From positions 22,320,001 through 22,384,000 of the forward strand of contig JAQFVV010000005.1 in the NCBI GenBank assembly GCA_028023455.1: DNA of 64,000 nucleotides, read 5' to 3'. Shown here in pieces: positions 2,095 through 46,224 of this stretch (positions within the stretch are counted from its first letter, which is position 1; every line of letters begins with the position of its first letter). The DNA comes from Epiperipatus broadwayi. Lineage: Eukaryota; Animalia; Onychophora. The position numbers were made by a program, and so were the translations under genes. The notes under the pieces were generated by a model. It was given only the letters and a program-made list of their open reading frames with translations, was not told the DNA's origin and did not search any database.

Positions 2095-3425
2095 TTATAG
2101 GCGATTTGAACACAGAATTTCAAGATTCCTTCAATTATCCATAACCACACACATGTGAAAAAGATAAATGATCTCTGATATACATATCTTGTGCAGAATC
2201 AGTACTCATCAGTTGGTCCAGATCATCATCTCCCACACATATATAATCAGTGTCTGGTTTATATTAACATAGAAAATCTTGAAACTTTAATAGACAGGCT
2301 TCAATCTATTCCACTCTCCAATTCTTCTGCCATCCATACCATTGAAAATATGATGATGGAAATGCCCAAGTTCCTTGTTGATGCCATTATTAATGTCATG
2401 CCCATGTTGACTTTGTTGCTCTAACCCCTTATAGAACCTTATCCATTTAAATACACAGAAAAGGGATGGTCAGGATACAGGCTCAATCTGTAACATTTGA
2501 ATGCAAGCATACTTTATATAATTAGAGTTTAGATGTTATTATAGGGGGTTTGAACACAGACTTTCAATCTTCCTTCAGATATCCACTTTATCTCATACAA
2601 CCGATATACATGAACAAACACATGTGAAAATGGTAAATGATCTCCAATATACATATTTCATGCTGAACCAGCACTCATCAGTTGGTCCATATCATCATCT
2701 CCCATATATATATAATCAGTGCTCAGTTTATATTAACATAGCAAATCTTGAAACTTTAATGGATAGGCTTCAACCTACTCCACTCTCTGACTCTTTAGAC
2801 ATCCATATCATTGAAAATCTGATGATACAATACCAAAATCCCTTGTTGATGCCAATATTAATGTCATGCTATGATTAAGTCACACTAACCCCTCATGTAT
2901 AGGATCATATTCATTTAAATACACAGAATAGGGTTGAGCAGGATACAGATACAAATATTACAGATCTAGCCTTATCCTGCCCATCTCTCTTCTGTGTATT
3001 TAAATGGATAAAGTTTTATACATAAGGAATTAGTGTGACTTAAAGTCAACATGGGCATGACATTAATATTGACATAGACAAGGGATTTGGACATTCCATC
3101 ATCAGATTTTCAATGACATGAATGGCTGAAGAGTTGGAGAGTGGAATAGATTGAAGCCTGTCCATTAAAGTTTCAAGATTTTCTATGTTAATATAAATTG
3201 AGCACTGATTATATGTGTGTAATGATGATTTGGACCAACTGATGATTGCTGGTTTGGCATGAAATATGTATATTGGAGATCATTTATCTTTTTTACATGT
3301 ATGTGGTTATATATAGCAGTTGTATGAAATAGAGTGGATAGCTGAAGGAAGTTTGAAAGCCTGTGTTCAAACCCCCTATAATTACATCTAAACTCTAAGT
3401 ATATAAAGTATTCCTGAATTCAAAT
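2095..3425. repeat. Repeat family A: two direct ~400-450 bp copies followed by an inverted copy (about 930-bp palindrome, 2495-3425)
   Basis: Copies at ~2095-2480 (+), ~2495-2946 (+) and ~2973-3425 (-); apex gcaggata...tatcctgc; the unit carries a tRNA B-box-like ggttcaaatccc motif near its outer end; a further copy at 63625-64000. Confidence 0.85.
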
Positions 3426-3452
3426 ATATTATCTTATATGTATATAAACTGA

Positions 3453-3691
3453 AAATGCCAATAGCTAACTAATCATACATATAAGTTATATCAAATCACC
3501 CCAGCCAATGCTTAAAATTAACCAAGACAATATTTGCAATCTGTTGCTAAGACTTTGTCAAGGCAACACTCAGATAATAAACAGAAATATTTTTGCTTTG
3601 ACAACAGATTGCTGATATTCTATTGGTTCATTTTAAGTACGGGCTGGGGTGATGTGATTTACATCTGATAACTAATTAGCTGTTGGCATTT
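3453..3691. repeat. Diverged MITE-like fold-back (~240 bp)
   Basis: aaatgccaatagctaactaat...atcaccccagcc...gcaatctgttg pairs with caacagattgc...ggctggggtgat...aattagctgttggcattt. Confidence 0.7.
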
Positions 3692-4281
3692 ATGACTTAC
3701 ATAACATATCAGAGCCAAACTTGCTTGTAAGCTACCAATAAATACTTCAATAAACTGGCCACATTATGTAAAGACTGATTCAGTGATTTGATGCAATGAT
3801 AAAAATTACAGACTTTGGAGCTTAAATTCCATGGACTGTAGCCCAGTTCTATCATTTTTCGTTTTTGAACTTCTTGTAATCTTGCAAGCAATAGTAATAA
3901 GAATAAAATAAAAGTGTAATATTATATTAATTGCACTATTCAAGAAAATGGGCTAAATTTGTTTCTTCTTAAGTTTTACCTTACTAGTTGATCTGGGAAA
4001 ATCTGCTACTATATACTTCAGTGATCTCAGTTATATACTATATGGATGCTTGGTGGCAAAAGATAGATATCAAAATTATATCTACTGAAAATCAATAGCT
4101 GGAAAATAGCTGGGGTTTTTTGTTGTTCTTATCGTCTAATATCCATTTATTTTTTATGTTTACATCAATGATCGTGTTGTGATTGAATGATTGCTATTAA
4201 ATGTCGATTCAATGTAAGCTAGAAAAGCTATGCATTACTTTGTTTTGGTAACTGTTATAATGCTTTAATATTTTTTTGTAG

Positions 4282-4410
4282 CAATTGATCCCTGTTTGTC
4301 AAATCCATGTGGTTTTCAAGCTATTTGTAAGAGTCGCCCTAATTCTTACATATGTGAATGTCCAGAGAACTTTCTTGGGGACCCATATAGTCCATCTAGT
4401 GGCTGTTTTG
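4282..4410 (+). CDS. EGF exon: AIDPCLSNPCGFQAICKSRPNSYICECPENFLGDPYSPSSGCF
   Basis: tttttttgtag acceptor, gtatga donor at 4411; 129 nt; 6 Cys. Confidence 0.92.
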
Positions 4411-4501
4411 GTATGAAAATTTATTTGTTTTTAGAAAAAGGTGTTAATTCACATTATTGATCATTTATTTTTGCTTACCATTTATATATCTGCTTTTGTA
4501 G

Positions 4502-4627
4502 ATGTTATTGATTTGCAGTGTTCCGATGTTGTTTGTCCATATGGTAGTATATGTCAGAAAAAACATGGGGTTGCCTGTGTGTGTCCACCAGGACATACAG
4601 GAAATCCATTTAGAGAAGGCTGTATAG
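4502..4627 (+). CDS. EGF exon: DVIDLQCSDVVCPYGSICQKKHGVACVCPPGHTGNPFREGCI
   Basis: gcttttgtag acceptor after a 91-nt intron, gtttgt donor at 4628; 126 nt; lies inside track ORF 4441..4647. Confidence 0.92.
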   Translation: MLLICSVPMLFVHMVVYVRKNMGLPVCVHQDIQEIHLEKAV

Positions 4628-4694
4628 GTTTGTATTTATTTTTATAAAGTTTTGTTAATAGAAAAAAAAAATTTCAGATGTTAAATTAACTTTT

Positions 4695-39830: not shown

Positions 39831-41204
39831 GATTTAATTAATCAAAAATATTAATTATTGCATAGATTGAATTAGCAGCTATTTTTTAGACCAGGTCTTT
39901 ATCTAGAAGAACTCTGCTTTTCAAGTTACATAGGATGTTCCAGAGTTATTCAGTTTTTTTTTTCAAAACTAACGTGAAAATTTCTATCTCACATAGAAAA
40001 TTAGTAAAGAAGAAACTATTACAAACAAAATCGTTTATTGTGAAATTTTTCTTATGGATTCCACATTGTTAAATTTACATGATTTTAAATAGAAGTTAAA
40101 ATTAAAACGTTTTTTTCTCTCATAAATATTAAATAATTTAATTTTTTAAAGCTGAGTAAAGAAACTTAGGTATATGTAAGCCTGCAACAATTAAAAACAC
40201 TGCACATGATTCATTAGTTGTTATATATTCTGATTTATCATCAAAGGTCAATGGAAACAGTTTTAATGGCCGACTGCATTTCAGTTTAAATGAAATTGTC
40301 AGAACACATTATTGCATAATTTAAAAGAATTGTGTTATAAAAACATAAAAAACAATTTTAACAAATAACTATCTTCTAAAGAATAAGAAATGGACTGATT
40401 TGATTAAATTTCAATTGAACTTGTAAATAACACCTAACTTGTGTTACATCAATGCCATTCGGATAAATAATAATAAGTCATTTGTTATCTAACGAAATAA
40501 ACTGGCATTGACATAATAAAAGGTGGTGGCTGTTATTTACAGGTTTAATTAAAAATGATTCTTTGGAGGTCTGACTTGTAAATTATTGTTGTAACATTTT
40601 CGAACTTGAATGTTTCATGAATAGTTTATATTAGTATTATATACTTGATAAGCTGTGAAAAAAATTATTATATTTTTATAAGCATGAAGATTTTAAACAC
40701 ATACTTGCATTGCAAATTTTCAACATAGAATATCTATTGGAAGTTAAATATTGCATAGCAGTACTTCATAATCAGATTCATTTATTTGTTATAATTATTG
40801 GCTGGTGATGGAAGAAAAACTTTCTTCAATTTTTAGTTTCAATAGTTTTCAACTTGATAGTGTGAGTCAGTTTTTCAAAATTTTGGTATTTTTTTTTTTA
40901 ATTAGAAAGGCTGTACTTTTGATGTTGAGGTACAGCATGCATTCCAATATGCTGCTATTTTTAGAAATTTAAAAAATAGATTATTTTGCCATAATAATAT
41001 AACCACTGCAATTAAATTTATTTTAATATATAAGCTGTTATTTTACTCATTTTATTGCATAGGGACTTCTTATCAATGTAATATAATATAAAGATAAATG
41101 CATCATAAAATTCTAAAAATATAAGAGCAAAGTTCATAAAACCAATCAATATGTTTTTTAGCTGATGTGATGTGATGTACTGTAGCTTCTCCTTAAACGA
41201 AGTC

Positions 41205-41395
41205 AAGAATCTCTCGGCAATTATACCCAGAAAAACCTGTTAGCCACTTTATTTTTTATTCTCTAGTCTAAGTTTTCCCATATTCTGCTCTATCCCATTT
41301 CCAACATAATCTTTGTCAACTCTATGGCCTTTATATCTAAATCCCCCTTATCTTTTCCCAAACCCAGCATAAAAACATGGCACTTTCGATTCATA
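41205..41395 (-). mobile_element. 3' fragment of an I/Nimb-like LINE, same family as 61440-62300
   Basis: aaacctgttagccactttat...ccaacataatctttgtcaactc...tatatctaaatcccccttatctttt...aaacccagcataaaaac nearly identical to 61482-61645. Confidence 0.75.
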
Positions 41396-41489
41396 TCTTT
41401 CTTAGATTGGTCAAGATTCTAATGAAGTGTTTTATGATGAATTTGAGGATAGTTTTTGTCATTCCAAAGAAGTGTATAATATTGATTGC

Positions 41490-44400
41490 TGCTATATACG
41501 TGTATAATAATGTTTTGTTAAAAGAAAATTATACGTATATAATACATTTTCTTTTAATAAAACTTATTTTAATAAAACATTAATTATTATATACAATTTT
41601 CTTTTAATAAAACTTATTTTAATAAAACATTAATTATTATATACGTATAATTTTCTTTTAACAAAACATTATTATACACGTATATAGCACCTCCACCACT
41701 TCAGAAATTATGGTTTCTGAAGTCTTACATAGTCTTTTAAGTAAGCGGGTTCTTTTCTTGTTCTCGAAGATCTGCGTGGAGATGTTTTCTCTTCTAATGG
41801 CGTTTTGTTAGTCTCTTGTAGTTCAGCTTTAATGGGCATTCTTGACAGTGCGTCTGCGTGTTTAATGATCTTTCCTTTTTTGAAATTTAGATCAAAATCA
41901 TAGCCTGACAACAGATTAACCCAACGTAACAGTCTAGGGCTTAGATGATCAGGTGCAGTTTTATTTTTTGCTAATAATCCCAACAGCGGTTTATGATCGG
42001 TAAAGATTTTAAACTGTCGACCATACAAATATTGGTGAAACTTTGTTATTGCAAATATGATAGCCAACGCCTCTTTATCTAGTTGACTATAATTTTGCTC
42101 AGCTTTTGTTAATGTTCTTGAAGCGAAGATGATTGGTCGCTCGCCGTCAACTACTGTATGGCTTAAGACTGCCCCTACTCCAACTTCGGATGCATCTGTT
42201 GTCAATATCAATTCGAGGCTACTGTCGTAATGTACTAATAAGCTGTTTGACGTTAATAATTCTTTAGTGTCACAAAAAGCTTTTTCTTGGGTTTGATCCC
42301 AAATCCATTTTTGGTTCTTTTTTAATAAATTGTATAGCAGTTTTGCTATGTGAGCTTCCCCTTAAGAAAAACTTCAAAATAATTAAGAAGTCCTAAGAAA
42401 GCTTGAAGTTCTTTAACATTTCTGGGTCTTCGTGCTTCCTTTACGGCTGCAATTTTTTGAGGGTCGGGTCTTTTTCCCTTTTTTGAGATTATGTGTCCCA
42501 GGAATTTTAATTCAGTTGCCATCCAGATACATTTGTCTGCGTTTATTTTAGCTCCAAAACTACATAACTTGTCGCAAACTTTTAAAACTCGTTCACGTAA
42601 TTCCTCTTCTGAATTGGCCATGACCAAAATGTCATCAAAATACGGTGTTACACCATCCAATTGCTGGAACAGCATGTCCATTTTGGCCTGGAAAATGTTT
42701 GGTGCAACCGTAATTCCATAAGGCAATCTATTATACTTAAACAATCCCTTATGTGTTGTAATAGTTAGCAATTCTGATGTGCGTTCAGAAACTGGTATCT
42801 GGTGAAATGGGGCCTTTAAATCAATTTTAGCATAGTGAGTTGCCTTTTGCATATTTGCCAGTATTTCTCTGACATTAGGTACAGGATACTGACTTTTAGT
42901 GAGGTTTTTATTTATTGTGGTCCTATAATCTCCGCAAATGCGAATCTGCCCATTTGGTTTAGTTATAACCACGATTGGAGTCGCCCATTCCGTTTTCTCG
43001 ACTGGCGTTAATACACCCTTACTAACCAGATTTATCAACTCTTGTTCTAACTTAGTTTGCAGCGCAAAAGGAACTTTTCTGGGTCTGCAGATAACGGGGG
43101 TTGCGCCACCTTGTAGCTCTATGTTTATAGGCGTCGTAATAATTTTTCCCTCATCACTTTTAAATAATTCACAATATTTATTTCTCATTTTTTGCTCAAT
43201 AGCAACTTTATTTATTACACATATCTCTATTCCCAAAGCATCGAACCATTCCCTACCTATAATAGGATTTAGACCGCCTTGTACTATATATATAACGGTA
43301 GTGTTCGAACCTTACTATTTAATTCAATCTGAGCCATCACCTTCCCTAATATTTTCATACTATTTCCGCTAGCGTCTTTTGCCCTTAAACTTGTCTTCAT
43401 TAATAAAGGAGGATTTTTTCGATTTTTCGCTACTTTCTCCCAGTCTTCAAGTGTCATCATTGACACGCCTGCTCCGCTGTCAATTTCCATTTTTACTGGT
43501 GTCTTTAATAAATTAACTGTCAGCATAAACTGACTTCCATATCCCATCTGTGTATTGTAAATATCACATTTTTTTTTATTTTCGACTTTACAAGTTGGTG
43601 AGCTGCCACGATCCTTTTCTCCTTTATTTCGACATACTTTCTGCAAATGCCCAACTTTACCACAAGTCCTACAATGCTCCTTATTATATTTACACTTACG
43701 AGCCATGTGGCTTTTTTTTCACAGCAATAACACACTATCTCATATGTTTTGCTCTTAATAGGTTGGGACTTATTTTCAGTTTTCCGAATATACGCATTTG
43801 TGGGTAAAATTTCTAAATTCTTCCGATTGGTCGAGTACTTTTTGTGGGCTACTCCCATTTTGGTTGCTTCATTATACGTTAACTCTCTTGAGGCCAGTAA
43901 CTGCTGCCTAAGCCTATCATCTGACATGCCCCAAAGTAATTGCTCAAGCAGATTATCCTCTAAGGCATCGCCATAACTGCAACTTTTAGCAAGTTCTCTT
44001 AGAGCTTGATCATAATCTCGTATACGCTCTCCCTTGTTTTGCCTTCGGTTTCTGAAGTGTAGTCTTGCGACATGCTTCGAAGGCTGGGGACTGAAAAAAT
44101 TATTTAATTTCCCCGTAACTACATTATATGGCAAATTCTCTGGCTCTTCGTGATCACAGAGTCTATTTGCTATTCGATTACTTGTTGCCCAGCATAACAC
44201 AATAACGTGGCAACTTTAATGGGGTTGCTTGTCGTACCATTAATCAAAAATAGTTTCTCGATTCTCTTAAGATAAATTGGCCAATCAAAAGGGTTATTAA
44301 CATTGAACTCGTTAATTGTTACCTGAGGCACTGATGTCATCATTTTCTATTTTGCTTTTTTTTTTTTTTTTAAAAAAAAAAATTTCTATTTCGCTACGAG

Positions 44401-44733
44401 ATAACTATTAAACATGCTTACTGAGACAAATTTCTATTAATACGCTTACTAAAACAAATTACTGTTAATACGCTTACTAAAACAATTTTTCCGACTACCA
44501 ATTCTATATTCACCCGGACTTCGATTCTCAATTTCCTTGTAGCTTTCTCTACGTTATACAATTCAATTTGAATCCACTACTGTTTCTAAATTGCACCAGA
44601 TTTTTCTACTGGAACGTATCCTGTCGATTAACTGTGCCAATTTTCTTTTAATAAAACTTATTTTAATAAAACATTAATTATTATATACGTATAATTTTCT
44701 TTTAACAAAACATTATTATACACATATATAGCA
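41490..44733 (-). mobile_element. Young Ty3/Gypsy LTR retrotransposon lacking integrase, with ~95-bp LTRs and 54-bp terminal inverted repeats
   Basis: TG...CA ends; perfect 5-bp TSD ATTGC (41485-41489, 44734-44738); direct repeats 41595-41689 and 44639-44733 differ at one base; PBS-like TGGCACAG at 44639-44632; PPT-like aagtggtggagg at 41701-41690. Confidence 0.92.
41708..44343 (-). pseudogene. gag-protease-RT-RNase H polyprotein (~878 codons) with four small frameshifts and no integrase core
   Basis: Gag MTSVPQV...WPIYLKRIEKLF; two CCHC knuckles; protease EIDSGA; RT KIDLKAPFHQI, RLPYG, YFDDILV; RNase H TTDASEVGVGAVL, YSQLDKEALA, TDHKPL, ADALSR; fused in frame to tail RRSSRTRKEPAYLKDYV. Confidence 0.92.
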
Positions 44734-46224
44734 ATTGCTTTTATTGTAAAGATATAATGTAAGAATAGAATACATGAGCAGCCATAATTAGACATTGTAT
44801 TAAAGTTTTTCAAAAAGAAAACTGTCTGCAAAGTGTTTCACAAAATATCATGAACAGAATAAGGACCAGTAAATTTTATATGTAGATGTATTTATGGTTT
44901 ACAAATTGACTTATATAGACACAGCAGAATTTATTTCTAGAGTATTATTATTATTATTTTAATTATTTTTTTGGGTCAGAATGGTCATATTTATTTGGGA
45001 ATAGTTGCTAATAAAGAAATATAAATTATGAATTTTCATAAACAACATAGTTTTTTTATTTTTTCAGAACACTAGACATTTAGTTAACGTATTGTCATGT
45101 GTTTAACTATATTAATATAAGATTATTCCCTGTATGATGGCAGAGTAACAGACTGAAGAGTAAAGAGTTCTTGAATGCAATCTCAATCTGTTACTTCTGG
45201 TGCTAAAACTTTGCATAATTCCTGCTATTTAATCAATGAATTATTTAATTTAGTGTAGTATTTGGTCCATTTTTACTTTAATTCCTTATATTATCTCCTA
45301 ATCTGTTTTTCTATTGGATTTTAAATAAAACAGCTATAGGAAGAGTACCAATTTTTACTGCCACACTTGATGGTCATATGATTAAATTATTACATTTTAA
45401 CATATTCTAGCTTATTACAAGAAAGTTCTATCAACTTTATGTTAAGACTTTGAGAGGCTATTTTAGAATTGAGCCTCAACTTTCTCAAACTGTTTAGTAG
45501 CAGCTTATTTGGAAGTAGGCTGTTTTGTTTGGTTAGTGTAAGCTATGTTTTAATATTGCTCTGCCATAGTATTAATAGCGAGAAATTGTTCATGATGTTA
45601 AAGACAGGCTCTTGATGTCTTAGGCAGAACATTATACCCATACAATGAAAAAAATCTACTATTATTAACAAAATCATACTTTTTACTTTGAAATAAGATC
45701 TCTTGCACAATCATTTGTGAAAAATTGCTGCATTTGGATTGGTTATTTCTCTTATTTAAACATGGTAGAATATCTTTGGCCAGTTATGTTATCTCATTAA
45801 AAATAACTGTAAAGAAGAGCAAAGTGAATTGAGGCACAGTCCCATTGTTACTTTCTAATTTTAGTAAAAAGATTAATTATGTAAAGAATAAAAGTGGATC
45901 ATCAAATTCTAATGCAATTAGAGAAATGAATTATAATTTATAAACCTTGTTCCTATTGACTTTTGGAATATATTATTCATGTATAGATGTATGTCTGTGT
46001 ATTTATATTTATGTATATATTAGTAATTGTTGAATCTGTATTTTAATAATATTTTAATTCTATAGGTATATAATGAGCTTGCAAATACAAGGGTGATAAA
46101 TTAGGTCATGTGACATATGACTTGATTTCTTTGTAATTCTATAGTAAATATGTGATGTAGAAGTTTTGTTATATTTTGGTATAATCTGTCCTAGTAATTG
46201 TGATTGTATTTTTTTTTGTTTTAG

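Follow-up and report, generated by a model that had tools for sequence, protein, structure and literature searches.

A single dead, one-off copy of a young Ty3/gypsy family lies within the 64-kb stretch of Epiperipatus broadwayi DNA analysed here (hereafter the window), and its far end is an inverted copy of the start of its own LTR. We put the probability at roughly 50% that this copy arose from a cDNA without U5 that acquired its second U3 end by a template jump and was then inserted in trans by an integrase acting on the two U3 ends. The copy belongs to a known kind but is defective, and its end structure, though unusual, is recurrent. The genome preserves how retrotransposon reverse-transcription products that lack an end integrate, since both the ends and the target site can be read in it for ten independent products. 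In all ten an inverted U3 start takes the place of a U5 end that is missing or unusable, and a normal 5-bp duplication is present, which shows that the integrase of the family is able to insert DNA with two identical ends.

The insert occupies 41490 to 44733 of the window on the minus strand (3,244 bp) and has a perfect ATTGC duplication on both sides, the right copy at 44734 to 44738 and the left copy at 41485 to 41489, outermost and beyond the inverted arm. Read along the element, the truncated 5' LTR (44640 to 44733, minus strand) consists of LTR nt 1 to 92 (44642 to 44733) plus AT. Its tail, ...AAAAGAAAAT, stands directly before the primer-binding site (PBS; TGGCACAGTTAATCGACAGG at 44620 to 44639, minus strand, reading TGGCACAG...), with no CA between them. 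A tRNA scan of the 64-kb window returned no tRNA gene. Five broken reading frames, identified from the ORF list and Pfam, together hold gag, a protease-like DSG motif, reverse transcriptase (RT) and RNase H, all on the minus strand. Gag, with one CCHC knuckle, and the protease-like motif lie in three overlapping broken frames at 43284 to 44343, where the putative protease was called from motif inspection only and Gag is supported by a zf-CCHC match in the gag of a sister copy. These are followed by an RT frame at 42346 to 43236 (Pfam RVT_1, E = 1.3e-26) and a frame with RNase H and the C-terminal tail of pol at 41708 to 42211 (Pfam RT_RNaseH, E = 2.8e-34). The polypurine tract GAAGTGGTGGAGG (41690 to 41702, minus strand) abuts the start of the truncated 3' LTR (41594 to 41689, minus strand), which contains LTR nt 1 to 92 (41598 to 41689), the AT of the spacer that precedes the PBS, and TG, the first two bases of the PBS. 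The 96-nt direct repeats at 44638 to 44733 and 41594 to 41689 differ at only one of 96 positions, which is a CpG site. Beyond the 3' repeat lies a re-copied unit of 49 nt (41545 to 41593, minus strand) made of LTR nt 47 to 92 plus AT plus G; it reads ATG where the preceding repeat reads ATTG, one T fewer, and both come to a stop at AT(T)G, where the plus strand is expected to run off at the tRNA junction. The far end of the element is an inverted copy of LTR (U3) nt 1 to 55 on the plus strand (41490 to 41544), running TGCT... from the outside in and matching the 3' repeat exactly (55/55). The original prediction had described a 5' copy ending in ...AAAAT rather than CA before the PBS, which we confirmed, and had placed the perfect ATTGC duplication outside the inverted end, where it indeed lies; the re-duplication and inverted end that it reported are both present, the inverted end being 55 nt long and not 54.

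The insertion event is real, and both host/element junctions are supported by reads. Among contigs assembled from public short reads of this organism, one of 170 nt matches 41349 to 41518 without a difference, including 29 nt of the inverted arm, and another of 1,418 nt covers 44706 to 45400 without a difference, both at single-copy depth. No short-read contig bridges the palindrome interior (about 41518 to 41690), so the source for this part is the assembly. An empty-site check, suggested in the original prediction, was done on paralogous sequences: in older host-repeat paralogues, about 70% identical, the two flanks are continuous across one RTTGY. For the right flank the assembly contains just one near-identical copy, and it was the ~70%-identical paralogues that served as empty sites. 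Positions 44734 to 45010 of this flank form an old dispersed repeat with dozens of such ~70%-identical copies genome-wide. To the left of the insert, 41108 to 41415 is a very high-copy repeat, with a summed contig depth of 10^5 to 10^6 compared with about 30 to 50 in unique flanks, and many contig joints and loose ends lie within it, at 41163, 41302 and 41375.

To see what the window copy has lost, it can be set beside its sister copies. At least 123 exact polypurine-tract/LTR-start junctions of the family are present in the 5.6-Gb genome, where its exact LTR starts number at least 217. Normal copies measure about 5.4 kb and have LTRs of 588 bp (TGCT...AGCA), 25 of which end in GTACACAGCA with differing flanks, and on their 5' side the LTR is followed by the 6-nt spacer GAAAAT and then the PBS. 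The LTR tips at the U3 and U5 ends (TGCTATATAC and TGCTGTGTAC) are identical at 8 of 10 positions as inverted repeats. After nt 92, all 26 sister copies examined run identically into the 588-bp LTR. In the window repeats, by contrast, nt 92 is fused to the pre-PBS spacer through a 5-nt microhomology, AGAAA, that is present in both partners, and this nt-92/AT joint is identical in the two repeats. The absence of CA before the PBS is explained by the LTRs of the window copy stopping at nt 92, without R and U5. The unit of 95 bp that the original prediction took for the LTR is thus nt 1 to 92 plus the last bases of the pre-PBS spacer, and the short “LTR” with inverted ends is here the stump of a far longer one, a warning for annotation wherever such a structure is met. 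Nor did any sister copy have the palindromic LTR of about 200 bp, halved later at the 5' side, that had been offered as an alternative, and this alternative is refuted. In the canonical LTR, motif inspection points to a TATA-like motif near nt 405 and to ATTAAA at nt 509, and the promoter and poly(A) signals of the family are likeliest to lie at about nt 400 to 510, a part that is absent from the stump. We also considered the 92-nt stump as a complete mini-LTR (TATA at nt 14, start near nt 46, ATTAAA at nt 67 and 82), which, if true, would account for the boundary of the re-copied unit at nt 46/47, but dropped this reading because the motifs of the canonical LTR are more conventional.

The window copy has also lost about 1.2 kb of the integrase region at 41816 to 41818 relative to sister copies, with a CAA microhomology at the joint; this deletion could have been inherited from a lost parent copy. 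A pattern for the 5' joint that allows either base at the variable PBS position has one match in the 5.6-Gb genome. Searches for the integrase-deletion joint and for the palindrome centre likewise gave a single genomic match each, even with two mismatches allowed. Because all three joints are unique, we regard the window copy as a one-off and not as a subfamily.

The end structure, on the other hand, recurs. When exact LTR starts were paired on each contig (all 127 that are not preceded by G, and the G-preceded ones among the matches listed), at least nine further insertions bounded by two inverted LTR starts were found among these matches, ranging from 100 bp to 8.6 kb. All of them have structures of their own and a perfect 5-bp duplication of their own, and LTR nt 1 is in each case the exact end of the inverted arm. 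One consists of a full 5' LTR and the interior up to RT, followed by an LTR-start palindrome (C489, duplication TAATG), while another of 378 bp has only 236 nt of interior between an LTR start and its inverted counterpart (C41, ATAAC). Two are solo palindromes of about 130 bp (C6413, AAACT) and about 100 bp (C12402, ATATC). A 5' LTR with interior is capped by inverted LTR nt 1 to 105 in C6204 (AGAAC), and in C6202 (ATTCA) a 3' LTR lacking its last 10 nt, and with them the CA of U5, is followed by inverted LTR nt 1 to 187. The remaining three are a head-to-head composite of 8.6 kb (C12, AAAAG), a mini-element of 668 bp (C6246, GTTGT) and a mosaic of four segments in alternating orientation (C6518, ATAGT). 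Counting exact-match starts among the matches listed, two-U3-end insertions make up about 10 of 130, or about 5 to 8%. A duplication of 5 bp was found at the window insertion and at 12 other family insertions that were checked. Several loci share one palindrome centre at a hairpin of LTR nt 63 to 88, which DNA folding also predicts, and this common centre points to strand switching by a polymerase.

Other rearrangements of the family were encountered in the same material. In C6205 and C12393 the 5' LTR is palindromic or rearranged while the 3' LTR and the duplications are normal, and in C6210 the 5' LTR is cut from nt 114 to its end. Within C6202 (L058 826-7835), about 1.9 kb of pol is directly duplicated, such that reference positions 2699 to 4632 occur twice. 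C6247 (L045 2060-6968) is a large inverted structure in which an antisense element body abuts a sense integrase end, a polypurine tract and a perfect palindrome of LTR nt 1 to 76. In C829 (L062 596-2327) a sense integrase end with polypurine tract and LTR lies at a distance of 24 nt from an inverted LTR 1-251 that has its start facing inward; as this LTR start is internal and not terminal, the locus is a separate class of rearrangement. In C6305 (L009 1383-2689) and C6288 (L010) two successive interiors are separated by a single LTR, which directly follows the polypurine-tract end of the first and precedes the PBS end of the second; both loci are tandem element-LTR-element arrays. Where an exact LTR start is not preceded by G (127 cases), the base in front of it is T in 73, C in 37 and A in 17, a skew that suggests a preference of the integrase for certain target sites or duplication ends.

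In the origin that we favour, events would have begun with a premature first-strand transfer, in which the PBS-primed minus strand, extended by about 7 nt, switched to AGAAA at U3 nt 88 to 92, close to the 3' end of the RNA. The plus-strand strong-stop DNA would then have comprised nt 1 to 92, AT and the PBS, and after the second transfer both LTRs would have been stumps without the rest of U3, R and U5, sharing the same joint. A premature first-strand transfer would leave the two repeats with an identical joint, as observed. The right end of such a cDNA (...GAAAAT-TG, 2 nt into the tRNA primer site) would have offered the integrase no CA. The plus strand may have run off there, re-annealed 49 nt upstream and run off again, before jumping onto the plus strand primed at the polypurine tract and copying it to its 5' end, which would yield ...TATAGCA-3', a perfect U3 end. 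Integrase supplied by other copies would finally have joined the two U3 ends to the target and produced the 5-bp duplication; as the U3 and U5 tips share 8 of 10 positions, two U3 ends should satisfy the enzyme. This is the order in which we infer the events. The core of the original prediction, that a second U3-type end was supplied before integration, holds, given the duplication lying outside the inverted end and the at least nine similar insertions with 5-bp duplications. Its stricter form, a self-templated snap-back, is not supported for the window copy, as there is no complementarity at either turn. Host end joining or the joining of two cDNA pieces is therefore a serious rival for this last step. 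RNA self-priming was rejected, as the LTR was found to contain no stretch of at least 7 nt complementary to the PBS region, and so was slippage between two 13-nt repeats (TTAAAAGAAAATT), for which a period of 54 to 55 nt is expected and 50 was observed.

The end-joining rival shares the U5-less cDNA and the two U3 ends with the template jump, but has the inverted end attached by host DNA repair and not by RT. Either cDNA fragments were ligated or filled in before integration, by end joining with templated insertion, or a concerted integration took one U3 end from each of two separate cDNA pieces, the free ends of which were joined later. We consider this possible, if rather doubtful, as the source of the window copy. 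In its favour, five of the ten insertions (the window copy, C6204, C12, C6202 and C41) join unrelated positions with 0 to 1 nt of homology, and C6518 is a mosaic of alternating segments. The 49-nt direct re-copy, which we take to resemble the templated insertions of polymerase-theta-type end joining, also counts for it. Repeated copying nevertheless fits better than random breakage with the single natural run-off point, AT(T)G, at which both the re-copied unit and the 3' repeat stop, and the palindrome centre that several loci share at the nt 63 to 88 hairpin speaks for polymerase strand switching. By sequence alone, a template jump and end joining cannot be told apart.

Explanations that place the peculiarities after integration, or outside biology, have less to recommend them. 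If a normal insertion had later been reshaped in the chromosome by LTR deletions and by one tandem and one local inverted duplication, the nt-92/AT joint in both repeats would require two identical deletions or a conversion. Against such a history also stand the position of the target-site duplication outside an inverted arm that ends exactly at LTR nt 1 and the like ends with perfect duplications at nine or more other loci. Taken singly, the integrase and 5' LTR deletions do resemble ordinary microhomology deletions, and C6210 has a deletion of the 5' LTR only, but as a whole we find this history improbable. Palindromes are a known failure mode of long-read data, and the segment 41518 to 41690, which no read contig bridges, might in principle come from a chimeric fold-back read. 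Given the independent short-read contigs that cross both host junctions at single-copy depth, the perfect duplication and the like ends at nine or more loci on other contigs, we attach hardly any weight to an assembly artefact. It is just as hard to believe in a propagating non-autonomous lineage, whether TRIM-, LARD- or MITE-like, with a palindromic LTR of ~200 bp, or a new inverted-repeat element. The terminal inverted repeats and duplication would suit such a lineage, as would the existence of miniature palindromic copies of 100 to 670 bp. However, the three diagnostic joints each occur once in 5.6 Gb, every mini-element is structured differently, the sister LTR is 588 bp long and not palindromic, and the stump lacks what is, from motif inspection, the likeliest (putative) promoter and poly(A) part.

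Returning to the template jump and the insertion by two U3 ends, we tentatively suggest that two-U3-end insertion may be a regular side pathway of the integrase, accounting for about 1 in 15 fixed insertions, from 100-bp palindromes to 8.6-kb composites, with hairpins in the first 90 nt of U3 driving much of it. If true, such a pathway would be a natural model for how retroelement integrases might have come to move DNA elements with inverted ends. The tolerance of the integrase for two identical ends is directly testable now, as are the frequency with which reverse-transcription accidents are rescued and the role of U3-start hairpins as their cause.

Among the closest known systems is Ty3/gypsy (Metaviridae). 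In the pol frame of a sister copy, Pfam finds Integrase_H2C2 and rve after RNase H, and this order of domains places the family in Ty3/gypsy. The window copy resembles these elements in its CCHC Gag, its RT followed by a retroelement RNase H, its TGG-starting PBS, its polypurine tract and its short target-site duplication of fixed length (5 bp), and its sisters have TG...CA LTRs. It differs in lacking the integrase that the rest of the family carries after RNase H, in having 92-nt LTR stumps that end in ...AAAAT in place of two TG...CA LTRs with U3-R-U5, and in a right terminus that is an inverted U3 start and not a U5 end. A DIRS/Ngaro-type element was rejected, as Pfam scans found no recombinase domain, a 5-bp duplication is present and sister copies have DDE integrase domains. 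A foldback or MITE-like DNA transposon was likewise set aside: the U3 start of an LTR family forms both termini, the joints are unique, the mini-elements all differ and there is no transposase. As the 5' joint pattern matches only once in the genome, there are no multiple short-LTR copies of the kind that a TRIM or LARD derivative would leave.

Our literature search found no in-vivo precedent for a two-U3-end insertion or for inverted-LTR termini, which is no proof of their absence. Retroviral RT in vitro yields strong-stop DNAs that self-prime or fold back, dead-end products of minus-strand DNA. The likeness is that hairpin-prone ends are copied back, just as several sister loci turn at LTR nt 63 to 88; unlike these products, the copied-back strand of the window copy starts at a plus-strand 5' end, and the product was integrated. 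In HIV-1 proviruses, premature first-strand transfer leaves LTRs that are incomplete at both ends, and a counterpart that affects only the 5' LTR is known too (PMC12657518). Premature second-strand transfer in HIV-1 (PMC12657518) has its parallel in the 5'-only LTR defects of C6205 and C6210. The DNA made by aberrant transfer in HIV-1 lacks proper ends, and its integration is not demonstrable without matched ends and sites (PMC12657518). Here, in contrast to these defective proviruses, both the ends and the duplication can be seen, and an inverted U3 end stands in for the missing U5 end. The 5' inversions of LINE-1 that arise by twin priming are inverted truncated copies with a normal target-site duplication made during insertion (PMC2837659). 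The window copy is similar in being an inverted truncated retroelement copy with a normal duplication that arose in the insertion event, but LINE-1 uses target-primed reverse transcription on the chromosome, whereas here a free cDNA was followed by integrase. A mutated end does not keep Rous sarcoma virus DNA out of the genome (Oh et al., cited in PMC12657518), the integrase inserting one end and host machinery the other, according to the summary in PMC12657518. As summarised there, this case shares with ours that retroviral DNA without one proper end can still enter a genome; in the window copy, however, both junctions are precise and carry the canonical 5-bp duplication that a concerted integration of two good ends would be expected to leave.
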